From positions 14,932,642 through 14,996,641 of the forward strand of contig OZ037770.1 of the NCBI GenBank assembly GCA_964035545.1: a DNA stretch of 64,000 nt, read 5' to 3'. Source of the stretch: Bugula neritina. Lineage: Eukaryota; Animalia; Bryozoa. Both the position numbers and the translations under genes were made by a program. The notes beneath the pieces were generated by a model. That model saw only the letters and a list, made by a program, of their open reading frames with translations, had not been told where the DNA came from and searched no databases. This document shows positions 10,983 through 55,903 of this stretch, piece after piece; position 1 is the stretch's first letter, and every line of letters starts with the position of its first letter.

Positions 10983-13900
10983 AACAGACAGACAGCTAAT
11001 CATTTTCAGAAGCAGCTGTTTTAAAGGACTACACCTATCATATGCTGCCACATCTCCTGACTGAAAGTCATCAGCTGATCAAAATCACTTTCAGTAATAA
11101 TTACCAGCTGAGTCAGCAAACAATTTAGCAACTTTAATTGCTGCTCAGAAATAAGTTAAAAACTCAGAAACATCTTAAAGACCTTTTTTAAAAAACTAAA
11201 ATATGCGAAGTAGCCAAGGGGGGACAATCGGTTTGATTGTATGACTCACTTCATTGGTTATAAAACCTATTTCATTAGCATAACCCATTATATTGGTTGT
11301 ACGACCTGTTTCATTGACTTGATATGGTCCAATATAACCAGTCTATCTTACCTTGTCCGTATTTTCTCACACACATGTGTTTGTGGACTGAAACCAGTAT
11401 ATACATGTACATATACAACAGATAATTAAAAAATTATTCAGTTATATTTTAGTGAAGCAGTCAATTTATCAACATATTATAGTAGTATAATGCCTCAACC
11501 CATTAGCTTATAGGAATTCCTACCAAAGAACAAAACAACTAAGATGTGAGAATAATGAGTTTTCCCTGTTTTGACACAACGCCAGTCAATAGAAAGACTG
11601 TCTTCATTAGCAAATGAAAAGGTAGTTACCATTTACACAGCTGCCAAAGACAGCAATCTGGCTTATTGTTAGCAGCCAAAGTAAATTCTGGGTGGCATTG
11701 GCTAAAAATAAATTATATATGTCTATAAGTTTCTAAGTCTTTCCAACTCTGAACTACTTGTCGTTAGAAACAGTTCAAAGCAGAAAAGTGAGTAAAAGTG
11801 CTGACCCTGGGACATAATGTGTAGGTATAAAAAAACTTAACCAGCTGCACAAGTTGTATTAAAACCCTCAACCTTTATTACATATAATATACAGGTTTCA
11901 GCAATTGTAGCCCCAGTGGAGGAATTTGAAGCATTTTAGTATATTGCAAAAATAATCTAAACTATATTTTTTATTTTTTGTTGCTTATCCATTTTTCTGT
12001 CCATGCATATTTTTAATTTATTATTTGTGGGTTATTAATGTCGGTTGGACTATTACAGCGGGCATCTGTTTACCACCCCCATTAATTTGGAGCTTAAATA
12101 GTTTAAGAACAACATCTTTTTACTAATTATATTTCATTAAATCATTTTAACAGATAATATTGCCTATACCACATGTTAAATCAATATTATTTATTAAGCT
12201 TTGGTGCAATTAGGAGTTGTTGACCCCTAAAAGTAGTTTGCATTTGAGAGAGGATAACTTCTAGAGTGGCACCAATAAACATCAATTGCATTTGAAAATA
12301 AAAAGCATTTCGTCTGGTGACTTAAATTGTAACCTTTGTTTATATACTAAAAATCATAAGTTTCAGTATAGCTTGATCAAAATTTAAAGCCAATTGAATC
12401 TACCAAAGTCATGTTATTGTGTTTATTGATTGAGTGGGTGTGTTCATCTAGCAAAGGAGGCGTGGTCTGCTCAAACTGAGACACTCCTACTCAATACGTA
12501 ATAGGTAGCAACCAGTACTTGTCATACACCAATTGTAATCAAACGTGACGCTGTTGTCTGTGTGATTTTTCACTCGTGTATTGTTTCAATGTTATTTGCA
12601 CTTAGTTTACACACTCGAGACTAAAATGATTATTATATGTAAACAAATTGCTAATATATTGTATTGATTTGCTTTACAAAAACATATATATAAAATCAAA
12701 CTTGAAACACAAGACAGATGAACGAGGTACAATGCCGAATGAACCAAGCAAGCAGTAAAAAAAATAGAAATTTAAATTTGAAGTTCACTAGTTCTTTATT
12801 CTTGCCACGTGGCTTTTGCTGTAGATACAGGTTGTTTTCAAATAGTTCCATAATAGCCAAAATCTTTACCTATAAAATTCCATTACAATAAATAATCAAA
12901 AACTTGTTATACGTGCATGTTGCAGAGTTTGCCTTTGGGATTGGTCACATTAATTTGTTAGATCTTACATAGAGTTAGAAAAGTAGAGTGCTTTTCTATC
13001 CGACTTTCACATGGAAAGCTTCTGCATGCTTTACTTTGGTAAATTAGCTATTTTAATCGGCAAATTAACTCTCCATGAATATAAGACTCTACAAAAGTAT
13101 TATTCTACAAACAATAGACTGCATCACTCAAACAATGAAATATTTATCGGTCTGAGAATTAACCTGCGAAAAGGAATTGATTTTATTTATCACCAAGTGT
13201 TAAAACCCTAGAGATGCGAGGTCGTTCATTGCAATACAATGGCAACTTCTTTGATCATAGCTATTTAAATCAGCTCATATAACATTTGAAAACCCACACT
13301 GAATATTGATTATGTACAATTTCACAGTGCACGTCAGATCATCTACATTTTATTACTATTAATTCTCATTAGGTCACCTCGGGCATTTCATCAGCGTTAT
13401 AATCTGAAAATTGAGGCTGGCGGGTGAAGTGATTATTTAGTTAAACTAAAATCAAATTTAAGCAGCTTTTTGTATCTAAAAGTTTATTATTTTTCAAGTT
13501 TCAAAATATTGTTACTAGTGAATCAGTTGAATTTTGTGATTCTGCTTAAATGAATAATCGAGACGAATTACATAGGATAATAAATTATCTATTTGAAAAA
13601 AAACAATTAATTTATTGATGATTTGGGCACTCACTCACTCTGAAAAACTGTCATGCAGCATTTTCTTTCTTTAAACAAAACAAAATAATGATAAATTTCA
13701 TACTCAAAAAAATGTTGTATAGAAAACTTGCTTAGCTGTTGGGAATAAAATTTAGCTGCAATTAGTCATTCGTGTTAACAAAAAGCAATTCATTCATTCA
13801 AGAAACTTTTCAAAAGCATTAAACCTGGTGTTATTCTAAGTTGAAAAAAATTTGATAAGCATTGCTTGATTAATAGATTTCAAATAATTCAAAGCAAAGT

Positions 13901-16505
13901 CCCCACCAGGTAATAATGGAATATCATCGATGATGTATTGAATTGGTAGCATTCAAAGTTAAAGCTCCAGTTGTTTGAGAGTATTCATGCTATACAAAAG
14001 AATTTTCACTACACACATTCTAAGTCTAGAATTAAGAGCCAAGATAAAAAATATCACCTGATTTTTAAGATCCAATCATTGTAAAGAAGTTAAAGTATGT
14101 CAAAAAGTGGAACTAGAAAAACTTTGGCAACGCCAGCTCTAGCACTTGTACCAGGATGAGTTTAAAACTAGCTAGCTAAAGTTATATCTATTTACTGTAT
14201 AAATATTATTATATTATTATTATATATTATATATTTGAACAAACCTTGAGCCTTTAATATTAGCCATGATTGTAGAATTGCTTACATATTATATTATTGG
14301 GTATAAAATATATAGATTGAATTATATGAGGTAGTTGAATAAATTCCAAAAATGGTACGTGAGTTAAAAGGCCTTTATTATAACTGTTATTTTTCTAATA
14401 AGAAAAGTTCACAACTGCCGCCAAAGAGAATTATGGTTTTTATAATATATTTTCTCAAATATAATTGGCAGCTTGTTATATTATCTTTAACAACTCATAC
14501 AAAGCAATATGTTTTGTATTATATCATTTATTATCATCAATCACTAACTACAGCTATTTTTGTGATACTTTTTGTCCGTTATATTTTCATAATGTTTTCA
14601 GTACAGTTGAGAGTTGGCATAATTATATAGTTACAGGCCATCAGTTATTAAATATATTTATCTAGTGTAAACACAAATCACAATGAAGTCAATATTTCTT
14701 ACTATCTAAACTCTAAAGTATCTTCAGTCTATCAAATTTAATTGAACAAAAGCCAACCACTGTTTGAGTGTGTATTGATTGTAGCTTTTAAATTGTATCA
14801 GCAAGCCTAGCTACCTTGTAACTAATAAAGCATTGGTAACAACAATCAAGATAATAATATCGTTTAAGGGTGGCAGTGGAGAAATTTAGGAAGCCTAAGT
14901 TCTTCAGCTTTATTACTAAATTTTGGTTTGGAGTGCGGTTGAAAATGTTCTATAACAGAAATTAAAATTGTTGAAAGAAACTAGGCAACTATTATCTTAC
15001 CTAGTAAGAATATTATATTGTTCGAGAGCTATGCAAGTGTAAGCACTAGGGGAGTAGTGAACTGGATGAGGAAAGAGACGCTATGACTTAGCATTCCTTA
15101 TAAAATGAGGATCGCTATCATACATAGGTTGTTAAATCAGAACTTGTTCTCATCAGCAAACTCATAATGATTTCGAACTAATAAATTATAGGGAAGATTT
15201 TCCAAGATATACGTAACTTCAGCAAAGAAAGTTTATAATATGTCTAATTGCATAAAACAATCATATTGACAATAGTATGTTTTAACAACAATGGGGGAAC
15301 TTGTGTGAAAGCTAGTTACATTAGCAGTGCACTTGGAACAAGCCTAGAAGACTCTGTAACTCTGTTTTGCAAATCAGTTTGAAATATTTATCACGTTGCT
15401 GAGCTACGACTAATGCATGCTTTTGTTCTCAAATATCATTTGTCTATATTTTGTCTTGATAAACAAAGGGGCGTTTGTTTTCCATAACATCATAGAATTG
15501 AACAAAACATTTTTTTCTGACAGCAAAAGCTGGATAGATTAGGACAACAAAAGGAAATGCAATATAACAAAGGTGGTCATCATTTTGTTATTAGCTTAGA
15601 TATATGATATTTCTCTCAGTAAAAGATGCTTTGAAGGGATTGATTTGGAGAAACTGTACATGCAGCTGTGCCAAGCTACACCCAAGTACCAAGGCTTACT
15701 AAGTGTATGGGGGTGCAGGGGGGGGCAGTTTATAGGGGCGTCTTGGGGGTAATGTACTGGTGTGGTGTGTAGGGATAGTGTGTAGGGGTGGGGTGTGTAG
15801 GAGGTGTAGTGTATAGGGGCAGTATGGGATAGCGTGCATGTAGCGAGTTGAATAATAGCAAATGTAAGAAGATGGCATTTTGGTTTATTGTTTTATAAGC
15901 ACTAACAGGTTCAAGTTTGTCCCTTTAATTAACAGCCCAATGACACATTTTCTAATTTTACTTGCACAAGTTTTCGTAGTTTTAAGAAGTGATCTGAGTG
16001 ATCTAGACGGATGATCATACAAAATAAAATGGGACTTTAGGAGCTATAGTGAGATGTCGTCACTAGCATTATGTGACACCAGTGATTAGCTAGGATGTAG
16101 GCTAGAGTTCTAACAGAATCTGTGGTGACCTCAGGAAGGGCATCTACTTGGTGTGACACAGTTCTAACCTAACTTAAAACTCTTACTATCAGGAATGGAG
16201 GATCTAATGGAACAGAGTGATCAAAAATATTGAGACCTGTTGTTCAAGATGCAAAAATAACTATTATTCTTTTCAAAAAGCAACTTAAAAAGTTTTTCTT
16301 TTAGACACAAAATATATTTTTGTTATTTCATCAGTACAAAACAGTAGAAAGGTAAATTTAAAATTATGTTATAAAATTTAATGAAATCACACACAGAACT
16401 TGGTTGAAAATAAATAGTTTACTATACATAACTATCTTTAAATGAATTACCCTACAAAACCAGGATGAATACATTTTGAGTGTCTCAGATTTTACATTTT
16501 CTTGT

Positions 16506-18707: not shown

Positions 18708-21700
18708 ATGTCAGTCGCGGACATCATAGACTGTCTACAGAAAATGGTTCAAGCTGGATTTGGTAAAATTCATGATTCGATTTGAATATAAAATTTAAAA
18801 CAGTCTGATTAGGTTGTACTCACTACTTGGCAGTTATTAGCCAATCATATGACATTCTGTAATTCAGTCACTCACCCATTCGCTCACTCATTCAATCACT
18901 CATTTACTCACTCACTCACTCACTCACTCACTCACTCACTCATTTACTCACTCATTCACTCACTCACTATTCAACAGTACTTTATTTTGATATAGACTAC
19001 CTATAAAGTGTAGATTACTATTTATTGTGTGTTGATTGAGTTCTTAGCTACTCATGGAACATATTTCAATAAACTCTGTATTGAGTTTCATATTGATAAA
19101 TATGTTTTTATTTAGTTGATGATTTACAGTTATTCCAATCCTTTAATTTTTTTCTTTTTCTTGTTTTTTAGAAGGACTGAGAGATAAGCAGGACTTGTTA
19201 GTATCAACGTTGACTCAACTTTCAAAGAACTGTGATCAAGCAATTGTCTTACTTCAGCAATATTCTAGTTGGTAGATAAAGATTTTTTCTCCTCATTTCT
19301 GGAATTTTAGCAGAATTTTTTAATAGAATATATTTATGGTAATTAATCAGCCAACTGGGCGTTGATACTTCTTATTCTCATTAGAAATATATTTCTGAAA
19401 TGTTTATGTTGCATAAGGTTTTAACGGGTAACTTAAAGTTTGCATCTACTAGGTCATGCTGCATCTACTATTTCGTATCATATTTAATAATGTGTATTAT
19501 ATTTAGTAGTTAATGTTATATCTAATGGTTTGTATTGCATAAATTTACTAGTTCTTATTATATCTAACAGTTTATGCTATATCTACTGGTTTGTATTGTT
19601 TGTACATGTAAATAAATTCACCATGCCAACCTCTACGTACACAACCCGGAGTGAGCTGAAGCAATTCAAGCATTTCTAGATATGGATGTTCAACTATAGT
19701 CTGACGTATGCAGCCAAGCTTTTGACTCACCCCAAGACTTGACTTGACTATGTTTAATATTGTTTTGTTTACAGTAGAGTGTGGAGCTGAGATATTTGTC
19801 AGTGAAAACTCAGTTGATCATGTGACCCAACCCAGGCATGTGACCGGGAATGATCATGTGACCGGGAATGATCATGTGACTAGTAGATACATACGCTTAG
19901 TCTACTGGCTGCTAGCAAAGTTAAACTCTACAATCAAACAGGAAGTTGACTTGTTTGACGCACGGCAGTCAGAGAATCTGCCCTCCGTAAAGAACGAGCA
20001 CACGGCGCCTCCTCTCCGCCCGGACGTGCTGAGCATAAGTAAGTAATGCTGTGAGACTTGTTATACCTTCTCAACATGTTGTCCTTCTGTGTTTAGTTGA
20101 CGTATTGTGATACCAGCTAGCTGTGGCCATTGAGTGAAGTCATACATGTGTATACCATGCATTATCTTACTCTTACCTGTAGACTGGTAAAACACCAGTG
20201 TTTCTGATAATTATGCCATAGAATGTCGGAGTTATCCTTCCAGTCAATATATTTTTGTAGACCACCAGTCTATCTTGGCCAAAGTGTACCAGTTTGTGAT
20301 AGCTCTTGCAGTAATTCCTCACTTGCCTGCTGGTGTGGGGGTACCCATAGGCACCCGCAGTAAATTTGGGCATATAGTTAGCTCCCTGGTTAAACCAAGC
20401 AAGGAACGTCTGATGTCTAATGTTACTGAACTTCTTGAGTTAATACAACCCAGCAACGTTCGTAAGTGAAGACAACTCCTGTGTTTCTTCATTCATACTC
20501 TGCATAACAAGCATGTCTTGTAAATGTTTTTAGCATCAGCTTTCAATGTTGATTGTATTATTATTTAATATATATTATATTATTGAATATATATTGTATT
20601 ATTATTTAATGTATATTATAATATTGTTTAACATATATTGTATTATTGTTTAATATATATATATTGTAATATTATTTAATATATAATATTGTATTATTAT
20701 TCGTTTTAGGTTCGGTCTTTATGGCCAAGCACACTGGAGATCTCATGGCAGCTCTTGCATGGCTGAGTCAGTCACATGACACATCTAGCGTGTCACATGA
20801 CACATCTAGCGTGTCACATGACACATCTAGCGTGTCACATGACCACTCAGGTGACAAGGAGAAAGCCTCCTACTTCAGACAATGTCTGGAAGATCTTATG
20901 ACCAGGAGTTATCCCCCAGTTATTGTGAAAGAGCTCCTGATTCTGCAGAGTGCGGGCCGGGGAAAAGTAGGAACTCATTCTATAGTACTAGCTGTAGTAT
21001 TGCAGCTTCACATTCTCTGCTGTAAACATAATTCACGATGGTTTTACTTGCTAGTGTTTACTCAACTTTCACGTGATGTAAATAGACTCTCGTTACATAA
21101 CCAATACAGTTCAGGCTGTCCATATAAATACACAAGGCAGTGAAATAATACATGTATATGATGTTGTAGAGAAGATAAAATAGCCAAGTGTTCTAGTTAT
21201 TCATTTCCTTCATAATCATGTCTTTAGGCTGATAAACTGCCACCTTGTTTGACACCCTGCGCTAAGTGTGCGCAGGTTGAGTGACACTGATGTGTTTGTG
21301 TAGACTCCCCACTGGCTGAGGGCGCTGTGTGGGTATCATCTCACTAAGATACTCGTGTCACCAAGCGGTGTCAGCTCTATCATTGCTGGTATGATCACCG
21401 TGGAAACAGACGACTGGCAACAGTTTAAGATGGTGGGGCGTGTGATAGCCACCCCTCCCAGAGGCTGGACAGCTCAGCGGTACTACAAGCTAATTGCTCC
21501 TCAGGTAATTTGCTAAACACTGTCTTCCATATTGACTTTAAATTCTAAATTCTAGTTCATTCTGCCCATAATGCTCTGTAATACTTCATGTGAAATTAAT
21601 GTAAATAGTTATGATGGAGTTATATTATAGTAAAGCTGGAAAAGTATTGAGTATCTATACTGCAGCTGTATGTTGACATGTGTCGCAGGTGCTCTCACTG

Positions 21701-31117: not shown

Positions 31118-34100
31118 ATGAAAATAACTATTCTAGGAGTATTCATAGCTTTAGATCTCTACCAAATAAGTTCTGACAGTGTAACGGCTCCGTTTACTTT
31201 GGAGAACTCGACTTCAACCTACCAGGAAATTTCACCAGGTATGGCTCTACTAGTCACCTATTTTATTATTAGGGAATAAATTGAGTTGCATTTGTGATTT
31301 CAATACTCGTTTGCTTTTATACAAATGTAGTTCTTTTCTTAAGCGAATTCTCTTGACCCATAAAGTCACTGGTTATAGTTATAAATCCTGTTTTATGAAC
31401 TCTACAAGTTGTGTATAGTTGCTCGCTCAACTTCTCTGTTAAAGAAGAAATTTAATAATTTAACTAGTAAAGCTTTTATGAGTAAAAGCTCTTGGCAATA
31501 TATTTTAGAATATTCGAATTATAATAAACTGTATTCCACCACAGTACCAGTTGGTTCACCACATTTCTTGAGTTCTAGATAGATAACACGGCGTTTTGTA
31601 AAAATTATCCCTAATTTGCTTTGCTTCTCTAACTAATTTGCATGCAGTAACAAAGTGTTTTACAAGCTAGTGACTAATGAAGCAATAAACAACATCACTC
31701 AAAAGCTTTCATTGTTCAAAGTTAAAAAGTAATTCCACCAATGCTCCAAATTTTTTATAATAATTATTGTTAAATTGCATCAGCTGATATTTTCCTGCAC
31801 TGTCATTGGGTCTGCAGAGTATTACATTCATTTCACGATTTCAAGACTGAAGACAATTTAAGTGCATGTTCTGTAAATTCATAGTGATGAGTGACCGAGA
31901 AGTGTAAAATGCAAACAATGTAACATAGAACTCTCTAGAGTCTAGGGTCGTTTAACATCAGACACTCTCAGCACAACTGATCAACAGCTTTCACAGCTGC
32001 GCTACTTTTCTCAGCTTCTCAGCTGGTTTGAACAAATTTTTATAAATAATTGATCGTAATTAATTATAGTTAACACACAACTATAATTTGCATATTGATA
32101 TTACAAGTGGCTAGCTGCAGCACGTAGTTAAACTGTAATGCAATAAGTACAGCTACTATACTGTCGTCTTTTCTTTATGTGTTATACTGGCTGTGAAGAT
32201 ACTGACATTTTGTCATCTATAACATGCAAGTGTCTGTTCGTGTTTATAACAACATTTGCACTGCAAACCCTTGGCTTATCATATTTTTATACTTTTTGAG
32301 ATTTAATGTTAAAAAACTTAGATTTAAATTAAGTGCATAGACGAACTTTTAAAAATAGTTATAATTATGTTCAAAAGCAATACACTTCTTTTATTTGGTT
32401 GCAGCAAACAAAAAAGACTTAAAATTATTGTATTTCATTCACTTTATGAAATTAGTTAACAAATAAAATTTGCTGCGTTGATTCCTGTAGATGTACACCT
32501 CATTTCCGCATCATGGTACACGGCTACGATTGGCTGGTCCAGTAATCTTGTATTCCTGAAGTTCATTGAGCTCCACTGCTCTCCACTGACTTCTAACTTA
32601 AAATTTAACACCAGTATCACATTGGACGGCTCCGTTTCTAACTACACACTAAAGGTATTTGTACTAGAGATCGGTTTATTGCAGGGAAGGGCAACTTCTA
32701 ATTGGTTGATTGCTGCCTTTTCTATTTCAAATAAAGAAGCTGAAAATTTGCTAAAACAGTTACGTGCAAACGAGCGGGACAATCAGTTAAAGTTTCAAAA
32801 TATATATTATTTGATTTGGTATAATATTCAACTACATAGCTCTAAATTTTAAACATTAAATAATCAAATCATCAGACTTTGAAAGTTTAAGTCCGTCTAT
32901 AATATTATAATTTTATTGTAAGAAAAATGTTTCGAAACTTGTGAGGGTTACTAAAACCTACTAAATGTTAGATTTTTACACTAACATTAGTTGTGTAATA
33001 GAAGCTTTTTATGCTCCAAAATATATTTCTTTATTTCATTAAATATAACATTATATTTCTATTTACATATTTTATTAAATATATATTTAACTATTTATAA
33101 CCCGTAGAGCCTATACCCAGCAGCCATCTATCAATTGCGTCTGGTCTTTCACTTCACTGACGGCATGGAATCTCTAGAGAGTAACATTCTGCACTTCAAG
33201 ACAGCTGCAGGTAAAGTTTTGTACTTCATTATAGCTGCAGGTAAAAACTACCTTAGCTTTACTCAGGCTATAACTTAGACTGAGAAAAAAGCAATTGTTG
33301 CAGTATTTTTATTTGTTTTGGAAATATTTATAAAGATTTAATAATTATTAATAATATATAAAGAAAGAAATGGGTTGCTTGCAGATTCTCTATGGCTTTC
33401 AGTTTTTGATTAATTGAAATCTTGAAGTTAATTGGTTTCAATAAATAAAGGGTCTTAAAATATACTGCTATGTAAAGTATGACAGAACAAATTATTGCAG
33501 TATCAATTGATCTTCCATGATGCAGTAAAGGATCCAATTACTGCCCTTCTATATTATTAGGCCTACAAATGATAACAAACATATAGCTATTTGGTATTAG
33601 TTATATAATAATAAACTATTCTAAAAAATAATGTCATAATTTATCATATTAAATAACTTGTTTATAATTTTAGCATGCTATACTAAATTGCTGTGTTTTA
33701 TTATGTCATTATAGTATATCATTATATAATGAAAAGAAATATTATATAATAAAAAAATGCAGTATAAGTTGTAATACTTATAGATAACTTATTAATATAT
33801 ACTATATAATATAACATAAGATAATATATAATATAATATAATATGAATATGGTTCAAGAGTTTAAAGATTGAGATACCTGAAATGCATGTGAATTACAAA
33901 TTACATTAATAATGAAACACGAATGTGTAGTGAAATAATGCAATACAGCCTGGAGAGTGATAAAATGTTAACAACCTGATGATATAATGAAGGATAGAAA
34001 TCTAGTAGCGGTGATATGCAGGGCAACTGCTGCAAACCACTGCATTTCCTGTTTGACTACAAACACTTGCACAATATTACACACTGCTGACTTTGTGCTG

Positions 34101-36038
34101 ACACAATACTATACACTGCTGACTTAGTGCTGACACAATACTACACACTGCTGACTTTGTGCTGACACAATACTACACACTGCTGACTTAGTGCTGACAC
34201 AATACTACACACTGCTGACTTTGTGCTGACACAATACTACACACTGCTGACTTCATACTGACACAGTATTACACACTGCTGACTTTGTGCTGACACAATA
34301 CTACACACTGCTGACTTCATACTGACACAATATTACACACTGCTGACTTTGTGCTGACACAATACTACACACTGCTGGCTGAATAGTTTACCAAAGAAGT
34401 AGGCAATCTGTATTTAAGTATTTGAGATGACATGGGAGAAGTGAATGAGGCATGTAGAAACAAAGCTCGTTTCTAGGCACATCTTGTAACCTATATACTA
34501 GTCAAGTTGTTTGACTAAAACGTCATCATGTTGATGAGAAAAGATTAAAACTAAATAACAGACATGCTGTATTGGGAAACTGCTTTATTCAGCACTGTCA
34601 GCTGTCACATCTTCATTATTATATAAGGGAGGGGCTTACATACCAGCATACTGCATATCTATAGAATATGTAGTGTGTCATCTCGAAATTATTATAAAGT
34701 AAACTCGCACATGTTTATAGTCACTACACACTACACACTACATACTACACACTGTACACTACACACTATACACTACACACACATCACTACACACTATATA
34801 CTACACGCTACGCACAAATCACTACACACTACATACTACACGCTACATACTACACACTACATACTATATACTATACACTATACACTATACACTACACACT
34901 ACATACTACACACTATATACTACACACTACACACTATATACTACACACTACTGGTTGAAATTCTTGCTATAAAGTAACTTCCTTTGCTGCATTTCTAGTC
35001 TAGAACCTGGGCTTTTCTAAATCTCTCCATTGCTGAACTTAATAATATACACCCTGTTTTAGTTTTCACTATGCAGTTCAGTTATATGTGTTGCAGTCCC
35101 AGCTAACATTGCGCAGACATTGCTGCTGAGTCAAGCTGTAGACATCGTTCTTATTGGGTGTTTGCTGACGTTTTGGGGCGCGGCTTGCTGCGGATTCTAC
35201 AGGCAATGGAGCTCCTTCCACATTCAACTGCCTAACAGATATACTCATTATAAAAGTGCGCCAAAAGGGCTGGAGCATGTCAAGGTATAATAATATAACA
35301 TTATATGCTTACAAACTTAAATTGTGAAATTACAGTTGCGCGCATCAACAAAATAATTCAAATATCATATACAGTGCTGTAAATTCTTTTTGAGAGGTAG
35401 GTGCAGTAATGGAGAAATTGAGAAAAGCCTGTGTTCTAGATTAGAAATGTAGCAAAAGAAATTATGCTCCCATAAGAGTTTCAACCTGCGCCTCAAACTA
35501 AAATTTGTAAAGAAATCTAAAGAACTTAGGTTATTTCAATTTCTCCACTACTGCTTCTAAATGCTATAATATACATAATAGTTCATTCAATAAACATGGA
35601 GAAGACAACTCTGTAGCACTACATATAATATATATAGTACTACAGAGTTGCCTTCTCAATGAATGAACATTTATTCGCTAAGCTCACACTGGACTTTTAT
35701 TACAAATATTGGAACATTTTTAGTTTTAAAATGCTTGCAATACAACATCACATTAAGCATGACTACTTTTCATAAACTCAGTATTATACAATTGTTATTG
35801 CAATATTTATTGTTGATTGTTCGGCATGTGCTAACATTTGTAGGTTGTCGGAAGGACACAAGACAGCATTATATATCGGGGCCATAATCGGTCTATGAGC
35901 ACAAAAATTGTTGAGAGAAATCGTAAATTAGCCCGAATGCACACATCTCCGGCGGCTATGGTTGAACTACGAAACACGACTCTAGACATCGCTGTTGGAA
36001 AACCTGATTATAAACGAAGGAGCACGACTCTACTCTAG
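31118..36038 (+). CDS. FNDC4/FNDC5 (irisin precursor)-like single-FN3 type I membrane protein, about 256 aa, 5 exons
   Basis: Exons 31118-31238, 32491-32654, 33108-33210, 35097-35284 (or in-frame acceptor 35082) and 35844-36038 join in frame. Product: weak signal peptide, one FN3 (TATIGW...YTLKSLYPAAIYQLRL...SLESNILHFKT), TM DIVLIGCLLTFWGAACCGFYRQW with the same L..W......F.RQ(Y/W) spacing as FNDC5 EVLIIVVVLFMWAGVIALFCRQY, then a cytosolic tail. A 16-codon uORF sits at 31054-31104. Confidence 0.8.
34070..34378. repeat. 32-bp minisatellite (ACACAATACTACACACTGCTGACTTTGTGCTG), about 9.5 copies
   Basis: Period 32 read directly; intron 3 of the FNDC-like gene. Confidence 0.95.
34722..34951. repeat. 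(ACACT)n pentamer microsatellite
   Basis: Direct reading. Confidence 0.9.
35398..35559. mobile_element. Short MITE-like element with imperfect terminal inverted repeats and TA flanks; a partial inverted copy lies at 34953-35038
   Basis: Left end TA-GGTGCAGTAATGGAGAAATTGA versus reverse complement of right end TA-GAAGCAGTAGTGGAGAAATTGA. Confidence 0.6.
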
Positions 36039-37129
36039 TGAAAAGACAGAATTACTTCATAACTGAGTCACAATCTTAAGAAACTTTTCGTAAAAACATT
36101 CATGTTGAACTTTTGATAGAAATTATTTATATCACTTGGAGCACTGCACAAGATTTTTAAATAGAAGATGACTTTCATGTTTATATTCTTATATAATATA
36201 TTATTATGATAGCTTTATTATATATTTATGATAATTTATATTGATGAAACACATGTCTATGTACATAACTTGAAAGATACAAAAACATTATAATTTTGAG
36301 TTGCCTTTGATTCTATTTACTATACACCATATTATATTAAGAAAATTTGCGGTATTTAATCATATTATCAAAAAATTTGAATTTCTTTTGCTGAATTCAT
36401 ATAATACAATGTTTAATGAATAAAATTAAAGTTTAAATGTTATTTAGATATTTTGCATTACTTATAACTTATTTTGCTAAAAAAATTACATAGTTTTACA
36501 TGGTTTTTAGCAGATAAATGTATCATTTATGCTAAAATGTATATACATCAATATAAAACTAAAATGAGTTGTAAAAATGACAATTGTTTTGATTCTTTTT
36601 TACTAAAATTATAAAATTAAGAAAAAGAATAAAAAACAACTGTTAAAATATTTATAAAATAAATAGTAGAATCTATGCATAGAATATTCTGCTAATCAAC
36701 AATATAATAATTGCTTGCAACTTTTAAAAGCATATCTTTAGACAGAAAATAGAGGAAAAACATTACCTAGGTAAAAAAAGAAATATAATACCTGTCAAAA
36801 GCCACTTGCAAAACCTTAGTGCACATAGACATAAACAAAACAGCTAGTATATTATTTACAAAAGTCAAAAATGCAATAACATTTAATGTTTTGCTTTCAG
36901 TATCATAACTTGCAAGAAAAAGCACAACCTCTCAAATACTTTTTTACACTGCATGTGCTAATTAAAACGTCAGTTACTTATTTTACAAAATCGGTTGCAA
37001 TGATTTTGAGTTACTTATTGGCAGAGGGCATAAAAATACTGTTGGTCAAAACTGATGCTAGTAGTTAAACTTAGTACTAGTACTGGTACTAGTTGATTCA
37101 GTTGGTAAGTAAGTCAGTTTGAGACTATA

Positions 37130-44769: not shown

Positions 44770-45025
44770 TGCAATATTCACTTGTATCAAGAGTTTTTAT
44801 TGGTTCAACTGGAAGGGCTATGCTAATACCAGTTGTATCACAAATTCCTATTGGTTTAGCTGAAAGGGTAAAGCTATTACCAGTTGTATCATGAGATGCT
44901 AATGATTCAGCCGAGAGTTTAAGAGTTTTACTAATTTGCATTCTCAACCCCTATTGGTGGAGTTGAGATAGCAACGCAATCAGCAAATATATCAATGAAT
45001 TCTATTGGTCGAGTTGAGATAGCAA
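44770..45025 (-). repeat. Degenerate 51-bp tandem repeat, about 5 units, overlapping the CCDC115 stop codon
   Basis: CTATTGGT.GAGTTGAGATAGCAA at 44951 and 45002; CCAGTTGTATCA-like at about 44778, 44829 and 44880. Confidence 0.7.
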
Positions 45026-46069
45026 GGTACGATATTGACACTGAAGAGACATAAGCTGAGACTGGGTGGTAGATAGTTGACTAGTTAGGGGCACACAACG
45101 TTGGAAACAAGCTTTACTATATCGCAACGACTGGGGCACTAGTACTCCAAACATTAGCAGTGGATCCTTAATCTCACTCTTTGGTTTATCAGCTTTTGGG
45201 GAGGACACCGAGTCACCCACTCCACCTATAGTTTGAATACTCTGTTCAGTAAAACGCTTGCGCACAGTTTCTTCTTTATCTTCTGATTGTAGAATAGGAG
45301 CTGATGGAGCGAGGTCAAAGGTCACAGAGTTGTCTTCTCTTCTGCAAGTCAATCTGACACTTGGAGTCATCTCCCTCTCATCATACTGTAATGCTGTTAT
45401 ACTTTTCTGTCCCATATTACTCCTGGCTTTAGCCATGTACAAAAACCCATCAGACAGCTCCTACCAACAAATATATATTCCTACTCATGTGTGCAGTAAA
45501 CTTCCTGTCTCCACCACTAAAGTTTAATAAAAAAACAAAATTTTATTTCTTTTATAACTTACTCACTATTAAAAAAAATTTCTGCCTATTTCAAAGTTTT
45601 TAAAAAAATGTTCAACACAAAAACAACTTGAATCCCACCCTACCCCCACAGCAACACAAGAGGTAAGACTTAGACTACGTGTGAATGAACTTAGGCTATG
45701 TGTAAAAATCAAAGAGGGGCAGACGTGGCAAAACTCAAAGATGCGGAACTCATGTGCTTAAACTAAATATTCTCATTACTTCAGAAATCTATGATTTTCA
45801 AGGATTTGAATGAGAACATTTCTTTTCAAGTCTATAGAACATTATTAGGCAAATATCTACTGATTTTCATTAAAACTAAGACAATGCAAATTGTAATTAT
45901 ATTATGAATTTTTCAAATTAGTATCAAAAATAAAAAAAAGTTATGGGCAATCTCACTTCACTTTACTCACCTTGTCTAGCTGCCTTCGTAGTGAAGACAA
46001 CTCTTGAAGTTTCTCACTTATTTGACGTACCAAAACATCCAACTGCTTAGCTGCACTTTCTGCAGGCAT
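45002..46069 (-). CDS. CCDC115: V-ATPase assembly factor CCDC115 / Vma22, 185 aa, two exons
   Basis: Exons 46069-45971 and 45460-45002: coiled-coil N-terminus, ELSDGFLYMAKARSNMG, LQYDEREM, DPLLMFGVLVPQSLR...F, which are Vma22/CCDC115 signatures. Confidence 0.93.
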
Positions 46070-50803: not shown

Positions 50804-53800
50804 TTAGAGGTAGTGCACCAGGCTTCCTATCTCTTCTGTACTTGGATCGAGGATACGGGACCAGGCCTCGATTGCGCTATCCAGGATGCACTCTCGGTAA
50901 GGAAGTGCCATACTCTGCCCGTGACGGGGCAATTGTGGGTGGGTTGGCTGAGTCTGTTCTTCTATCTGGCTGCCTGGTGCTCCAGATATCCAATACTGGC
51001 GGGCGACCAGGGCCCGAGGCATTGCCAGTATTGGAGAGTCCTCTTCGTCTCTGCCTGCGAGGTGGTCGCCGTATAGAGTGCCCTGCTCCTCCCCAGCTGT
51101 GAGCTGGAGCTCAACCGGTTCGGGGTCAGGGCCACTAACGCTGGCGGAACACACCTCGGAAGAGGGGGTGTCGTACTGCTGGCTGCGGGGAGCCGAAACA
51201 GGAGCTGGTGGGGGAGGGGAGTCGGATCGACTGGCCTCCTCGGTATCCTTACGCTCCTCTGTTTGGGTATCTGGCGAGGTAATTCCCATAGCTGATGCTA
51301 GTGTCTGAATAACAGTGTTTAAATTATACTTAGGGGTATCAGGATTAGAATTCAACTTGAGCTGTAACTCACGTGCTAGCTGTGTGAAATCTTCTTCTTG
51401 GTGGAATTCTCCGGGGTGATGGAGGGAATTTCCAGCCAAGATGGGGTGGTCGTCCGTACTGGGTGGGTTGTCCTCATGAGGGGGCCACTCCAGGTGCCCT
51501 ACAGCATAGTCTGCCAGATACCTGGGGGGTCTTCTTGACCGCTGGCTCCTCTCAATTGGAACAGGCACCGGTGGTGTTGGTGGCTCCTGGGCTACCCTAG
51601 TAGGGGGGTCCCCGCCTTCACCCAACACGGGGGTGGGGGTGTCCTCCCCCAGGGAGGGTGGTGGTCCTAGGGCTTGCCGCTGTTCCTGTTCCCGCTCCTC
51701 TCTCTGCTGTCGCTCCAGCTGCTCTATCAAGGCGGCCTGCTCCTGGTCCGACTCTCTGGGAACCATAATTTCCACCTCTCGGGGCTGGGTGGCCCGTCCT
51801 CGACGGTTGGGCTGACGGTGGGGCTCCAGGAGGGGTGGAGCCTGACCCACCGCGTCTGGGCTGGCATGGTAAGGTTTGAGGCGCTGCTCGCTCTGGACGG
51901 AGATCTGTCCAGAGCGCTCCACACGGTACGTGTGGTTGGGCAGCACCTCCACTACGCAGTAGGGACCGACGAACTTGGGCTGAAGCTTAGCCGACTGTCC
52001 GCGTCGCCTACGGTAGCTCACCATCCAGACCCAGTCTCCCACCTGGTACAACGGGGGCTCCTCTGAGTCCTCTGTGCGGGTCTGCCACTGCTGGGTGCGC
52101 AGCGCATCATGAGCTTTGCCCATGATGTCCATCAGACCCTCCACATATTCGTGTACCGGTGACTCGGGGGCAGGAACATGGTATGTCAGGTGTTCCGGGA
52201 CCCGCGTCTCTCGGCCTAGCATCAGGAAGTTTGGGGTCTCCTGTGTGGCGGAGTGTGGTGTGCTGCGGTAAGCCCGCATGATCTGCGGCAGCACCACGTC
52301 CCATTCTTCCTGACCTCGACCAAGGAGCAGGCTCCTGAGCGCGTCACCCAACATCCTGTTGTTCCGCTCGACGACTCCGTTCCCTTGCGGGTGATATGGG
52401 GTGGTCCGACTCTGGTTCACCCCCCATATCCGGCAGAGGTCTCCCATGAGCTGGGACTGGAACTGGGCGCCCTGGTCCGTATGTATCTGCTCGGGCAAAC
52501 CGAGGTAACAGAACACATTTTGGTCCAGGGTCCGGGCCACCGTGGGGGCGGTTGCGTCTGGGATAGCCAGAGCATCCGCCCACCGGGTAAAGTGGTCCGT
52601 GAGCACCAGTATCCAGGTGTTCCCTCTGGCGGATAACGGCATAGGCCCGACGAGGTCTACCGCCACTACTTGCCACGGTCGACCAGCGTACAGCCGGCGT
52701 CGACCAGTGGTTTCCGTGGGGCGGCCATGCTTGCTAGCTTGGCAGACCTCGCATTGCCGTACCCGCAGTCGTACGTCCCGAGTCATTCCGGGCCAATACC
52801 AACGCAGCCGCAGACACCTGATGACCCGACTGACTCCAGAATGAGCCTGCTTATGGGTGTCCCAGATCAGTTCCCGTCGGAGGGCGCGTGGACAGACGAC
52901 GCGGTCCCTCTCCTGCTGACGGTTGTCTGCTGCTAACGTTATCATCAGGAGGCCATCAGGACTGACCTTGAGGGCATCCCAGCGACGACAGAGGAGTTGG
53001 AACTCAACGTCTCCCTGCCGCTGCTGTTCCTCGCTAGGTCGTCGGCCCTCCTTCTTGGCCCGGAAAATGTCCGCTACCGCGCCGGGTAGCGTCTCCTGGA
53101 GTCGGCACAGCTCCTTGACATTCTGGTACAGAGTGGGGTTGGCGTGAAGCGCCTGGACGTCGTCTGAGTGGGTTTCGGTCCGAAGATGGCCGTGCTCCCA
53201 CCGATAGACGGCGCCCTCCCCTAACTCTGTTTCCACGTCAAGGCGAGCGGGTCCCCCGTCTCGCTTCTCAATGTGCAGGCATTGCTTACAGTCCTCTACC
53301 GGCCGGCGGCTCATGCCGTCGGCGTTCCCGTGCTTCCGGCCAGCACGGTGCTCTATCCGGTAAGAGAACTCGGCAAGAATCTCTAGCCAACGAGCCACCT
53401 GGCTCGAGGGCTCCGCACGTTTACACAGCCATATCAGTGATGCATGGTCTGTTCGCAAACGGAACGTTCTCCCATACAGATATGGCCGAAAGTGCTTGAC
53501 CGCCTTGACTACTGCTAGGAGTTCCTTCCTAGTGGTGCAGTAGTTCTTCTCGGCAGCCGCGAGAGTCTTGCTGTAGTAAGCCACGACCACCTCACTTCCA
53601 CCCTGGACTTGAGACAGGACAGCTCCCACGCTGTGGTCGCTGGCATCGGTGTCCAGGATGTACTCTTGGGCTGGATCAGGATACGCCAGAATTGGCGCCT
53701 CCATTAGCCGCTGCTTGAGGTGGTCGAATGCCTGCTGCTCCTCCTGTGTCCACTGCCACCGGACCCCCTTTGCGGTCAGCCGATTCAACGGCTGAGCCAC

Positions 53801-55903
53801 TCCTGCGAAGCCAGGTATGTACTGCCGGTAGTACCCTACTAGGCCCAGGAACGCGCGCAACTCAGGGAGGTCACGGGGGACAGTCCACTCCTTCACAGCC
53901 TGTACCTTCTCCGGGTCGGTAGCGACCCCATCACGGCCAACCACATGGCCCAGGTACGTGACTTCCGGCTGCAGGAGTGCACACTTGGAGGGCTTCAGCT
54001 TCAGTCCAGCTGCCCGGAGACGGTCAAAGACCTCCCGCAGACGACTGACATGAGTCGAGAAGTCTGGGGAGATGACAATGACGTCGTCCAGATAGATGAG
54101 GAGGGTCTTCCAGTGTAACCCACTGAGGACCTGCTCCATGAGCCGTTGGAAAGTTGCCGGAGCGGACGTTAGTCCAAATGGCAGTACTTTCCACTTCCAG
54201 AGCCCGTCGCGGGTGATGAACGCTGCTTTGTCCTGGGCATCAGGACTGAGGGGTACTTGCCAGTACCCGCTAAGCAGATCCAAAGTACTGAAGTACTTGC
54301 TACCCGCGAGGGCATCCAGAGACTCATCTATCCGTGGGAGAGGGTAGGCATCCTGGATGGTAACGCTGTTGAGTCTGCGGTAGTCCACGCAGAATCTCCA
54401 GCTACCATCCTTCTTCTTGACCAGGACTACTGGAGAGCTCCACGCACCGTGGGCAGGCTCAATCAGATCCCGGTCGAGAAGATCCTGTACCTGTCGGCTC
54501 ACCTCCTTCTCCTTCTCCGGGCCTAGACGCCGGGTAGGCTGCCTGATGGGAGTGGTGCCGGCTGCCAGGGGTATCTCGTGGGAGATGACCTTGGTCAGCC
54601 CCATGTCTCTATCGCCACGACTGAAGACATCACTGTACTCCGCAAGTAGTTGAGCCAGTACTTGGCGTTCAGTACTACTTGTACAGTTTCCACACGCTCC
54701 ATCATACAGGTCAGCCATATGCTCCGGGACTGCTCCTCGTCTGGTGTGAGGGGGGTTCCCCTGGGTGTCGGCCACTGTCTCCAGTGCTGGACCCACATCC
54801 GCTTCCTGGATGGAGTGGTACTTCCCCACCAGCGCTCCAGCCGATAATCGGACAGGTTCCGTGAAGGGGTTGATGCACTGCACGAGGAGCTCCTGCCGAC
54901 AATCTAGCCGATTTAGGCTGTTTGCTAGTCGGATCGCTCCGTGCGTTCCCTCAACCACCCCCAGGTCGGCGATCCCCTTGCAGTTGACTCTGCAGCGAAG
55001 AGTCGCCTGGGATCTCCCCGGAACCGTGCAGTCCCGCACTACCTGGACTCCGCCCACCAAGGGCCTTCCGAACTTGTCGACGCAGACAAGTTCCTTCCCA
55101 GCCATCACCACCACTGACTTCTGGAAATCCATGTGACACTGGTGTTTCTCCAGAAACGGCATTCCCAGGATGGCGTCCTCCTTCAGCTGGCTGACTATGA
55201 ACGTCTCGTGAATTGCTTGATCACGGACGCGTCCAGGTAGTGAAATGACGCCGTAGAAAGGAATGCATGATCCGTCCGCCAACGTACCATGCGCACCTTC
55301 ATACGGCTCGAGGCTCGCCCGCTCTCGTGCACCAAGAGTGTCAAAGAGACGCCTACTCAGCAGGTTGGTAGTGCACCCAGTATCCAGTAGGAATGTGGCA
55401 GCTTTACCCGAAATCTTTCCGGGTAGGAAGTAGCTGCTTCCATACGGCTGGGTGCTCCTGGAGCGGTCAGTCTCTGGGGGAGACACAACTTGGGTCCGCA
55501 CAGCGGGCCTCCTCTTCGTCTTAGAGACAACGGGGGTTTTCTGAGGTCGGGAGGGTAGCTTGGGGTACTCTTGCGAGTAAGCTGAATCCTCCTCCACAAC
55601 CTCCTCGGGCAACCCCGCGAACCGGTTCTGGAGTGGCCAGGCCGGAGGATCGGGCAGACCTTGCGGTCTCCGAGATCTCCGAGGTGCCTGCCATCCTGCT
55701 TCTTCTAGCTGCATCCGGGTCTCGAGTGGCACGGCCGGAGGATCGGGTAGACCTTGCGGTCTCCGAGATCTCCGTGGCCTCTGCCACTCGGTATCGGCAG
55801 ACCCTGTGGAGGTCTCTTCTTCTCCTCTCCGAGTCCTATCCCGGATGGGATTGGCGTGAGGCCCACGGTTGGCGGAAGTTACCGTGAGCCTTGGGTGTTT
55901 AAA
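50804..55903 (-). CDS. pol: Pol polyprotein of element 1 (protease, RT, RNase H, integrase), entered by -1 frameshift from gag
   Basis: FLLDTG (PR), YLDD (RT), TDAS...ELLA...TDH (RH), H-H-C-C, D-D-E and GPY (IN). The frame is open from the slippery site at 55903-55897; the ORF track start at 55732 is a GTG. Confidence 0.95.
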   Translation of the reverse strand, partial: FKHPRLTVTSANRGPHANPIRDRTRRGEEETSTGSADTEWQRPRRSRRPQGLPDPPAVPLETRMQLEEAGWQAPRRSRRPQGLPDPPAWPLQNRFAGLPEEVVEEDSAYSQEYPKLPSRPQKTPVVSKTKRRPAVRTQVVSPPETDRSRSTQPYGSSYFLPGKISGKAATFLLDTGCTTNLLSRRLFDTLGARERASLEPYEGAHGTLADGSCIPFYGVISLPGRVRDQAIHETFIVSQLKEDAILGMPFLEKHQCHMDFQKSVVVMAGKELVCVDKFGRPLVGGVQVVRDCTVPGRSQATLRCRVNCKGIADLGVVEGTHGAIRLANSLNRLDCRQELLVQCINPFTEPVRLSAGALVGKYHSIQEADVGPALETVADTQGNPPHTRRGAVPEHMADLYDGACGNCTSSTERQVLAQLLAEYSDVFSRGDRDMGLTKVISHEIPLAAGTTPIRQPTRRLGPEKEKEVSRQVQDLLDRDLIEPAHGAWSSPVVLVKKKDGSWRFCVDYRRLNSVTIQDAYPLPRIDESLDALAGSKYFSTLDLLSGYWQVPLSPDAQDKAAFITRDGLWKWKVLPFGLTSAPATFQRLMEQVLSGLHWKTLLIYLDDVIVISPDFSTHVSRLREVFDRLRAAGLKLKPSKCALLQPEVTYLGHVVGRDGVATDPEKVQAVKEWTVPRDLPELRAFLGLVGYYRQYIPGFAGVAQPLNRLTAKGVRWQWTQEEQQAFDHLKQRLMEAPILAYPDPAQEYILDTDASDHSVGAVLSQVQGGSEVVVAYYSKTLAAAEKNYCTTRKELLAVVKAVKHFRPYLYGRTFRLRTDHASLIWLCKRAEPSSQVARWLEILAEFSYRIEHRAGRKHGNADGMSRRPVEDCKQCLHIEKRDGGPARLDVETELGEGAVYRWEHGHLRTETHSDDVQALHANPTLYQNVKELCRLQETLPGAVADIFRAKKEGRRPSEEQQRQGDVEFQLLCRRWDALKVSPDGLLMITLAADNRQQERDRVVCPRALRRELIWDTHKQAHSGVSRVIRCLRLRWYWPGMTRDVRLRVRQCEVCQASKHGRPTETTGRRRLYAGRPWQVVAVDLVGPMPLSARGNTWILVLTDHFTRWADALAIPDATAPTVARTLDQNVFCYLGLPEQIHTDQGAQFQSQLMGDLCRIWGVNQSRTTPYHPQGNGVVERNNRMLGDALRSLLLGRGQEEWDVVLPQIMRAYRSTPHSATQETPNFLMLGRETRVPEHLTYHVPAPESPVHEYVEGLMDIMGKAHDALRTQQWQTRTEDSEEPPLYQVGDWVWMVSYRRRRGQSAKLQPKFVGPYCVVEVLPNHTYRVERSGQISVQSEQRLKPYHASPDAVGQAPPLLEPHRQPNRRGRATQPREVEIMVPRESDQEQAALIEQLERQQREEREQEQRQALGPPPSLGEDTPTPVLGEGGDPPTRVAQEPPTPPVPVPIERSQRSRRPPRYLADYAVGHLEWPPHEDNPPSTDDHPILAGNSLHHPGEFHQEEDFTQLARELQLKLNSNPDTPKYNLNTVIQTLASAMGITSPDTQTEERKDTEEASRSDSPPPPAPVSAPRSQQYDTPSSEVCSASVSGPDPEPVELQLTAGEEQGTLYGDHLAGRDEEDSPILAMPRALVARQYWISGAPGSQIEEQTQPTHPQLPRHGQSMALPYRECILDSAIEAWSRILDPSTEEIGSLVHYL
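55859..55903 (-). promoter_or_regulatory. -1 programmed ribosomal frameshift signal
   Basis: U UUA AAC in gag frame, 5-nt spacer, then an 11-bp stem AGGCUCACGGU/ACCGUGGGCCU; pol is in the -1 frame. Confidence 0.85.

Follow-up and report, generated by a model that had tools for sequence, protein, structure and literature searches.

In the bryozoan Bugula neritina, introns 3 and 4 of a conserved gene each contain a copy of the same MITE family, inverted relative to one another and placed on either side of the exon that encodes the transmembrane (TM) helix. They most probably derive from two independent insertions, with their pairing in the pre-mRNA being incidental and unselected. The initial annotation of the window (the 64-kb stretch of DNA analysed here, whose positions are used throughout) had instead read these repeats as the arms of an RNA switch, by which skipping of the TM exon of an FNDC5-like gene would produce a soluble, irisin-like protein.

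A single-copy gene for a predicted membrane protein

The gene was read exon by exon, and its exons were searched individually. The gene model comprises the following features:

31118-31238, + strand: exon 1, coding part, with the start codon and a signal-peptide-like N-terminus (Kyte-Doolittle maximum 1.33 over residues 1-19; GC 0.38 vs 0.31 in the intron), ending in phase 1 (CAG/gtatgg)
32491-32654, + strand: exon 2, encoding the N-terminal half of the one FN3 (splice sites read; weak FN3 similarity; orthologous exon with the same 3' boundary)
33108-33210, + strand: exon 3, C-terminal half of the FN3 (35% match in the orthologue), ending in phase 1 (CAG/gtaaag)
35097-35284, + strand: exon 4, 188 nt (cag/TCC ... 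AAG/gtataa), with a linker of ~12 residues, the TM helix (Kyte-Doolittle maximum 2.03) and a conserved cytoplasmic juxtamembrane motif
35844-36038, + strand: exon 5, coding part, with the cytoplasmic tail and the stop codon TAG at 36036-36038 (39-40% match in the orthologue, its start strongly conserved)
36419-36424, + strand: AATAAA, a candidate polyadenylation signal ~380 nt after the stop, read from the sequence

The splice sites are consensus-like, and exon GC (0.38-0.49) exceeds that of the introns (0.26-0.32). The full product of ~256 codons is a predicted type I membrane protein with a signal peptide, one FN3, a TM helix and a cytoplasmic tail, and its ectodomain carries three N-x-S/T sites. 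Exon 4 is single copy in the genome, and own-genome scans found no paralogue of the gene.

When exon 3 (end 33210) is joined directly to 35844, the frame shifts and reads (G)CRKDTRQHYISGP, 14 codons that end at a stop at 35885-35887, for a predicted skipped product of 143 codons (40+1+54+34+14). The arithmetic of skipping in the initial annotation, including the position of the stop in the apparent terminal exon, is thus the same as ours.

The repeats flanking exon 4 belong to one MITE family

The 188-nt exon at 35097-35284, bounded by AG/GT splice sites, lies between two arms. Counted without gaps, 34953-35038 and the reverse complement of 35401-35486 are identical at 66/86 positions, a recount that gave the same figure as the initial annotation, and 74/86 positions are pairable when G-U is allowed. 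An inverted-repeat search of the window returned 34975-35041 paired with 35398-35464 (67 nt, 82% complementary, 356 nt between them) and a second inverted pair, 35398-35426 with 35531-35559 (29 nt, 83%). The upstream arm ends 51 nt 5' of the exon-4 acceptor and the downstream MITE begins 109 nt 3' of the exon-4 donor; as in IRAlu-type pairing, complementary inverted repeats are present in both introns flanking the exon. Only one public run (X1) includes the locus; one of its DNA contigs spans 34922-35416 with zero differences, and the arrangement of the arms is therefore not an assembly artefact. We read a joint between 34906 and 35398 in the DNA run, which has a 28-nt side, as probable repeat-to-repeat mapping from another locus and not as a deletion allele.

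Searches of the species' own genome (216 Mb, 321 contigs) gave 288 first-look candidates for the upstream arm, at 80-85% identity, and at least 2,343 for 35398-35600; among the matches listed for the latter, similarity ended sharply after ~166 nt, at 85-91% identity. We built a consensus from 20 fetched copies aligned with their flanks, and placed the window copies on it by blastn. The element is ~170 bp long and non-coding, with terminal inverted repeats (TIRs) of ~26-29 nt (83%), as befits a short TIR element, and 8-bp target-site duplications (TSDs), exact or near-exact, border copies L009, L011, L015, L017 and L018. Its length of ~170 bp, its ~26-nt TIRs and the 8-bp TSDs in several copies therefore mark it as a hAT-like MITE, with the putative superfamily assigned from TSD length only. 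The TSD of the window copy itself has decayed (3/8 positions match). The family is abundant: a 23-nt TIR word, with at most one mismatch, had 685 matches in the genome as compared with 0 for the reversed control, and the summed contig word depth was 413,304 over the element vs ~125 for flanking single-copy sequence, for a depth-based estimate of ~3,300 copy-equivalents. The 40 copies that we sampled were mostly full length. Repeats in the region of exon 4 are listed below:

35394-35567, + strand: complete MITE copy (blastn 35394-35563, extended to 35567), ~170 bp, 92% to consensus
35398-35426, + strand: 5' TIR of the complete MITE (inverted-repeat search; alignment of 21 copies)
35531-35559, + strand: 3' TIR of the complete MITE, the "arm 3" of the initial annotation (inverted-repeat search; own fold)
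34953-35045, - strand: upstream arm, an inverted half copy (blastn 34953-35041), consensus positions 5-93, 83% to consensus (three-way alignment)
34070-34377, unstranded: 32-nt tandem repeat, 9.6 copies, in intron 3 (Tandem Repeats Finder)
34722-34951, unstranded: 7-nt microsatellite, ~33 copies, adjoining the inner break of the upstream half copy (repeat search and Tandem Repeats Finder)
35595-35661, unstranded: single-copy hairpin with a 33-bp stem, in intron 4, unrelated to the MITE (fold -39.5 kcal/mol, z -8.45)

No Rfam family matched the hairpin at 35595-35661 or any other part of the 64-kb window. Two more fragments of the MITE occur in the window, at 7437-7524 and 14875-14963.

The 5' half of the complete MITE constitutes the downstream arm of the inverted repeat, and the complementarity between the arms, which is far above the chance level, exists because both are copies of one repeat family. 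That the arms are MITE-derived, as the initial annotation had suggested, is therefore borne out. Its further observation, that pairing of the downstream arm with the upstream arm and its pairing with "arm 3" exclude one another, likewise holds, except that "arm 3" is no separate third arm and belongs to the complete element as its 3' TIR. The initial annotation had also set high-copy MITEs without effect against its own proposal; the first half of that description, the high copy number, applies here. Judged by divergence from the consensus, the upstream half copy is the older of the two. The same consensus position marks the end of another of the sampled copies (L052), and the half copy may therefore be a recurrent short form of the MITE rather than a unique truncation.

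A distant orthologue retains the TM exon and lacks the repeats

When exon 2 was searched with HMMER against 1.84 billion representatives, one true match (P0002) came back, a 94-aa ORF fragment that is 40% identical and reads on into an intron at the boundary where exon 2 of the window also ends. The contigs that carry it are metagenome-derived host scaffolds, on which we matched exons 2-5 of the orthologue, at the locus termed L021. The comparison covers this one relative, a distant one, with the following exons:

L021:10073-10225: orthologue of exon 2, 38-40% identity
L021:13048-13140: orthologue of exon 3, 35% identity (E 0.005)
L021:13218-13403: orthologue of exon 4, 63% identity over all 62 residues (E 3e-25)
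L021:14088-14294 (or to 14282): orthologue of exon 5, 39-40% identity

Exon 1 had no homology support in L021. The TM exon of the relative is likewise 188 nt long (13216-13403) and occupies the same position in the gene, and the conserved block starts at the helix's cytoplasmic face and continues past the exon 4/5 junction. No part of the protein is better conserved than the TM and juxtamembrane region, with 63% identity as compared with 35-40% in the FN3. An orthologue with conserved exons, together with the lack of a paralogue, shows that the gene is real and single copy and that its membrane-anchored form is under the strongest constraint; on this sequence comparison, the membrane-anchored protein appears to be the selected product.

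The arms are absent from the orthologue. An inverted-repeat search found none around the L021 TM exon, the MITE consensus had no match in the 20-kb L021 locus, and tblastx of L021 against the window gave similarity limited to the gene's own exons. Intron 3 of L021 measures only 67 nt (13149-13215) and is therefore too short to hold an arm, and intron 4 measures 684 nt. Conservation of the arms in relatives, to which the initial annotation had looked as a check on its proposal, is accordingly not seen in this distant orthologue. In L021, too, skipping of the exon would change the reading frame and lead to an early stop, with a short tail possible there as well; this is also what chance would predict.

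These data bear on a further explanation, in which 34953-35486 would be one composite transposon that brought the exon in, so that the "TM exon" would not be a host exon at all. Inverted repeats that enclose an exon do superficially resemble a TIR-bounded element. However, the inner 356 bp are single copy in the own-genome search, the exon has an ortholog of the same length and gene position in a repeat-free relative, the arms differ in age (83% vs 92% to consensus), and the downstream arm belongs to a complete element with TIRs of its own. Given the single-copy interior and the orthologous exon, we rejected this origin, which has practically no chance of being correct.

The gene shares the domain order of FNDC5

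FNDC5 (the irisin precursor), FNDC4 and Drosophila Iditarod have the same domain order as the window gene, namely a signal peptide followed by one FN3, one TM helix and a short cytoplasmic tail, and the Iditarod assignment in Drosophila uses the same kind of domain-order argument (PMC10523451). The window gene shows this combination of a signal peptide, a single FN3, a TM helix and a short tail, with an FN3 assignment that is itself weak; it differs from these proteins in having no sequence-level link to them and in an FN3-to-TM linker of only ~12 residues.

Pfam searches of each exon found nothing above threshold, nor did any Pfam family match the conserved cytoplasmic motif. The family DUF4808, which we take to be the marker of the C-terminal TM/cytoplasmic region of FNDC4/5, scored 12.9 bits on the TM exon (E 0.17) and 15.9 bits in the orthologue (E 0.021), both below its cut-off of 27, and the unrelated TM families LRR19-TM and MASE5 scored alike. 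A scan of the species' own genome with DUF4808 gave no match, as did the controls of that scan. DUF4808 is among the domains of FNDC genes listed in PMC8615036.

In sequence searches of the PDB (E<=10), exon 2 matched only the FN3 of human fibronectin (E 0.87) and exon 3 had no match; irisin was absent for both halves of the FN3, each of which was searched separately and therefore with lower sensitivity to irisin. By the same separate searches, the FN3 was not closer to irisin than to generic FN3. The ESM Atlas gave weak fn3-cluster leads for exon 2 (0.78-0.83) and no usable match for the TM exon, a word-index protein search with the TM exon yielded no candidate, and no FNDC protein was among the HMMER matches to exon 2 in the 1.84 billion representatives. 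The other HMMER match to exon 2, a bacterial Big_9/cadherin repeat protein (P0001), was rejected as spurious, its score being the sum of six short repeats. As far as these searches reach, "FNDC5-like" would describe the domain order only, and no sequence evidence ties the gene to irisin: with irisin not found and DUF4808 below threshold, the FNDC5-like, irisin-like identity of the initial annotation comes down to architecture.

The pairing is strong, unbalanced and without signs of selection

Folding of the region had been suggested with the initial annotation, and the long-range duplex indeed appears in the MFE of 34940-35580 (-184 kcal/mol, z -6.9), which it dominates. The predicted energy of the arm-arm duplex is -98.7 kcal/mol, vs -49.5 kcal/mol for the MITE's own hairpin, and blocking arm 1 changed the MFE of the region from -184 to -129 kcal/mol, a cost of ~55 kcal/mol. 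The two pairings are exclusive yet, in these models, unbalanced by ~50 kcal/mol; a switch would need balance, that is, two exclusive structures of comparable stability, which we did not find. The RNA would therefore not be poised between long-range and local hairpins, as the initial annotation had it.

Selection on the pairing would be expected to leave co-variation between the arms or conservation in relatives, and neither was seen. In a three-way alignment of the half copy, the full copy and the consensus, 68/89 positions were identical in all three; 15 changes were private to the half copy and 6 to the full copy, and shared-derived or compensatory changes numbered 0. The identity observed between the arms (76%) is close to the 77.5% expected from independent decay (0.83 x 0.93 = 0.775), supporting that their complementarity was inherited from the family consensus and then decayed. 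Inverted pairs of the family are, moreover, common. We took 40 copies in order from the start of the list of TIR-word sites on contig C1, each with 1.2 kb on either side, and an inverted partner lay 0.4-1 kb away in 3/40 of them (L035, L037 and L048). The confidence interval of this proportion (7.5%) is wide; should the same rate apply across the genome, such pairs would probably number on the order of a hundred or more. We infer that the pairing is neutral.

The selected switch, in which long-range pairing would loop out the TM exon, the local hairpin would restore its inclusion and regulated skipping would yield a secreted FN3 irisin-like ligand, draws on the mutually exclusive pairings, which do exist, on the skipped frame, which does stop in the apparent last exon, and on the frameshift to an early stop that L021 would share, itself also the chance expectation. 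It is opposed by the lack of any compensatory change, by an orthologue without arms and with a 67-nt intron 3, by the frequency of inverted pairs in the family (3/40), by energies ~50 kcal/mol apart, by the placing of the strongest protein conservation in the TM and cytoplasmic region, and by the lack of irisin-specific similarity. We therefore hold a switch of this kind to be very improbable. Just as little likelihood attaches to a co-option within the lineage, whereby pairing tuned by the MITE hairpin, helicases or ADAR would give a regulated skipped mRNA for a secreted FN3 protein of 143 aa, alongside a circRNA of 188 nt.

Possible by-products of the pairing and comparison with known systems

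The incidental reading can be cast as a sequence of events. The downstream insertion would be the complete element at 35394-35567, and the upstream one the older inverted half copy at 34953-35045, in an intron swollen with tandem repeats. The complementarity of the arms would come from the family consensus and would not be kept by selection. In the pre-mRNA, the two copies could form a long imperfect duplex with the 188-nt TM exon looped out and, like inverted Alus, this duplex may incidentally cause the exon to be skipped in some transcripts or give rise to a circular RNA of 188 nt. By analogy with those systems, low-level mis-splicing or circRNA may arise from the pair.

A measurable effect of this sort that is not under selection, with the pair promoting back-splicing of exon 4 (35284 to 35097, giving the 188-nt circRNA) and/or its skipping, along with A-to-I editing, is possible, though we think it the less probable outcome. 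The 86-nt duplex is strong and lies near both splice sites; on the other hand, helicases and co-transcriptional splicing often prevent intronic inverted repeats from pairing. Inverted repeats in flanking introns promote back-splicing, in competition with pairs formed within an intron (reviewed in PMC11263572). In rice, however, MITEs occurred in both flanks of only 72/2,354 circRNAs (PMC4647462), and flanking MITEs alone are therefore a weak predictor of circRNA. Because the potential to loop out the exon is physically real and matches the inverted-Alu mechanism, we grant an unselected circRNA or skipping event this limited chance, and a selected switch only the very slight one given above.

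Several observations speak against an incidental reading. The MFE fold is dominated by the strong arm-arm duplex (-98.7 kcal/mol), the splice sites are close to the arms, at 51 and 109 nt, and inverted-repeat systems with comparable geometry do alter splicing (PMC11263572). With divergences of 8% and 17% from the consensus, both copies are old, and the resulting persistence of the pair also counts against that reading. The arm pair may have a genus-specific function, the comparison above being with one distant relative.

A close parallel is with the IRAlus in introns that flank circularised or skipped exons of primate genes. There, too, two oppositely oriented copies of a short and abundant mobile element can form a long imperfect duplex that brings splice sites together, and pairing across introns competes with pairing within an intron (PMC11263572). 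The window pair differs in that its element is a DNA-transposon MITE and not a SINE, in that the within-intron competitor is the element's own TIR, and in that the pair is known here from DNA alone. Plant MITEs offer a second parallel: in the rice (PMC4647462) and mulberry (PMC6593561) reports, flanking-intron MITEs are likewise considered drivers of circularisation or alternative splicing, whereas the window pair lies in an animal genome. With MITEs of the hAT superfamily, the element shares its length of ~170 bp, its non-coding nature, TIRs of ~26 nt, 8-bp TSDs in several copies and a copy number in the thousands.

Regulated skipping driven by the pair would mean that two DNA-transposon copies had given a membrane protein a soluble isoform, and would be an invertebrate counterpart of the inverted-Alu mechanism. 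Our data make it far more probable that this inverted MITE pair is ordinary and incidental, and it bears no sign of selection. Caution is called for in reading such arrangements, since exons enclosed by inverted repeats are common in the Bugula neritina genome as a matter of background. The more durable result is the gene itself: a single-copy FN3-TM gene with no detectable annotated homologue in the searches made and with a TM and cytoplasmic segment strongly conserved with a distant relative.

Repeats within and around the gene

Intron 3 of the FN3-TM gene measures 1,886 nt in the window versus 67 nt in the orthologue at L021, a metagenome-derived host locus of a distant relative, and has thus grown mostly by repeats, among them the following tandem array.

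34070-34377: tandem repeat in intron 3, unit 32 nt, 9.6 copies, 90% identity

Fragments of the ~170-bp hAT-like MITE also occur elsewhere in the window, covering consensus positions 66-155 with 72-79% identity.

7437-7524, minus orientation: MITE fragment
14875-14963, minus orientation: MITE fragment

A genomic copy (L052:1195-1287; G000:C1:22895099-22895191) stops at consensus position ~93, as does the upstream arm at window position 34953, and this common end point suggests that either a short form recurs or a subfamily exists with only the 5' half in common. In the genome-wide list of matches to the 23-nt word from the terminal inverted repeat (at most 1 mismatch), several pairs of sites are spaced by 2.5-2.7 kb, three of them given below as examples; the MITE may be carried there by some larger element or by a segmental unit.

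Contig C1, 7365693/7368418: terminal-repeat word pair
Contig C1, 5315263/5317978: terminal-repeat word pair
Contig C2, 6590796/6593339: terminal-repeat word pair

Immediately 3' of the complete MITE, intron 4 holds a further hairpin.

35595-35661 (context 35575-35674): near-perfect hairpin, 33-bp stem, loop 1-3 nt

Its predicted fold reaches -39.5 kcal/mol (z -8.45). The hairpin matched no Rfam family and no second copy was found in the animal's own genome, making it single-copy; it may be a palindrome, a transposon footprint or a small-RNA precursor.

Neighbouring genes and retrotransposons

Exon-sized ORFs on either side of the gene are parts of neighbouring animal genes, and two long, open pol-type ORFs, both with protease, RT, RNase H and integrase domains, are Ty3/gypsy-type LTR retrotransposons, lying in a block of 43-61% GC as compared with ~33% in the remaining window.

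20721-21143, plus strand: TANGO6 N-terminal domain match (E 8e-9)
45005-45442, minus strand: Vma22/CCDC115 match (E 1e-10)
50804-55732, minus strand: pol-type ORF, 1,642 aa
58517-62470, plus strand: pol-type ORF, 1,317 aa

A conserved juxtamembrane segment

The cytoplasmic juxtamembrane segment crosses the exon 4/5 junction.

35099-35284 + 35844-35930: juxtamembrane segment (counterpart L021:13218-13403 + 14088-14174)

Its conservation with the distant relative is far above that of the FN3 ectodomain (63% identity across exon 4, as compared with 35-40%). The segment, which matched no Pfam family, is a conserved motif in an otherwise orphan, single-copy gene.
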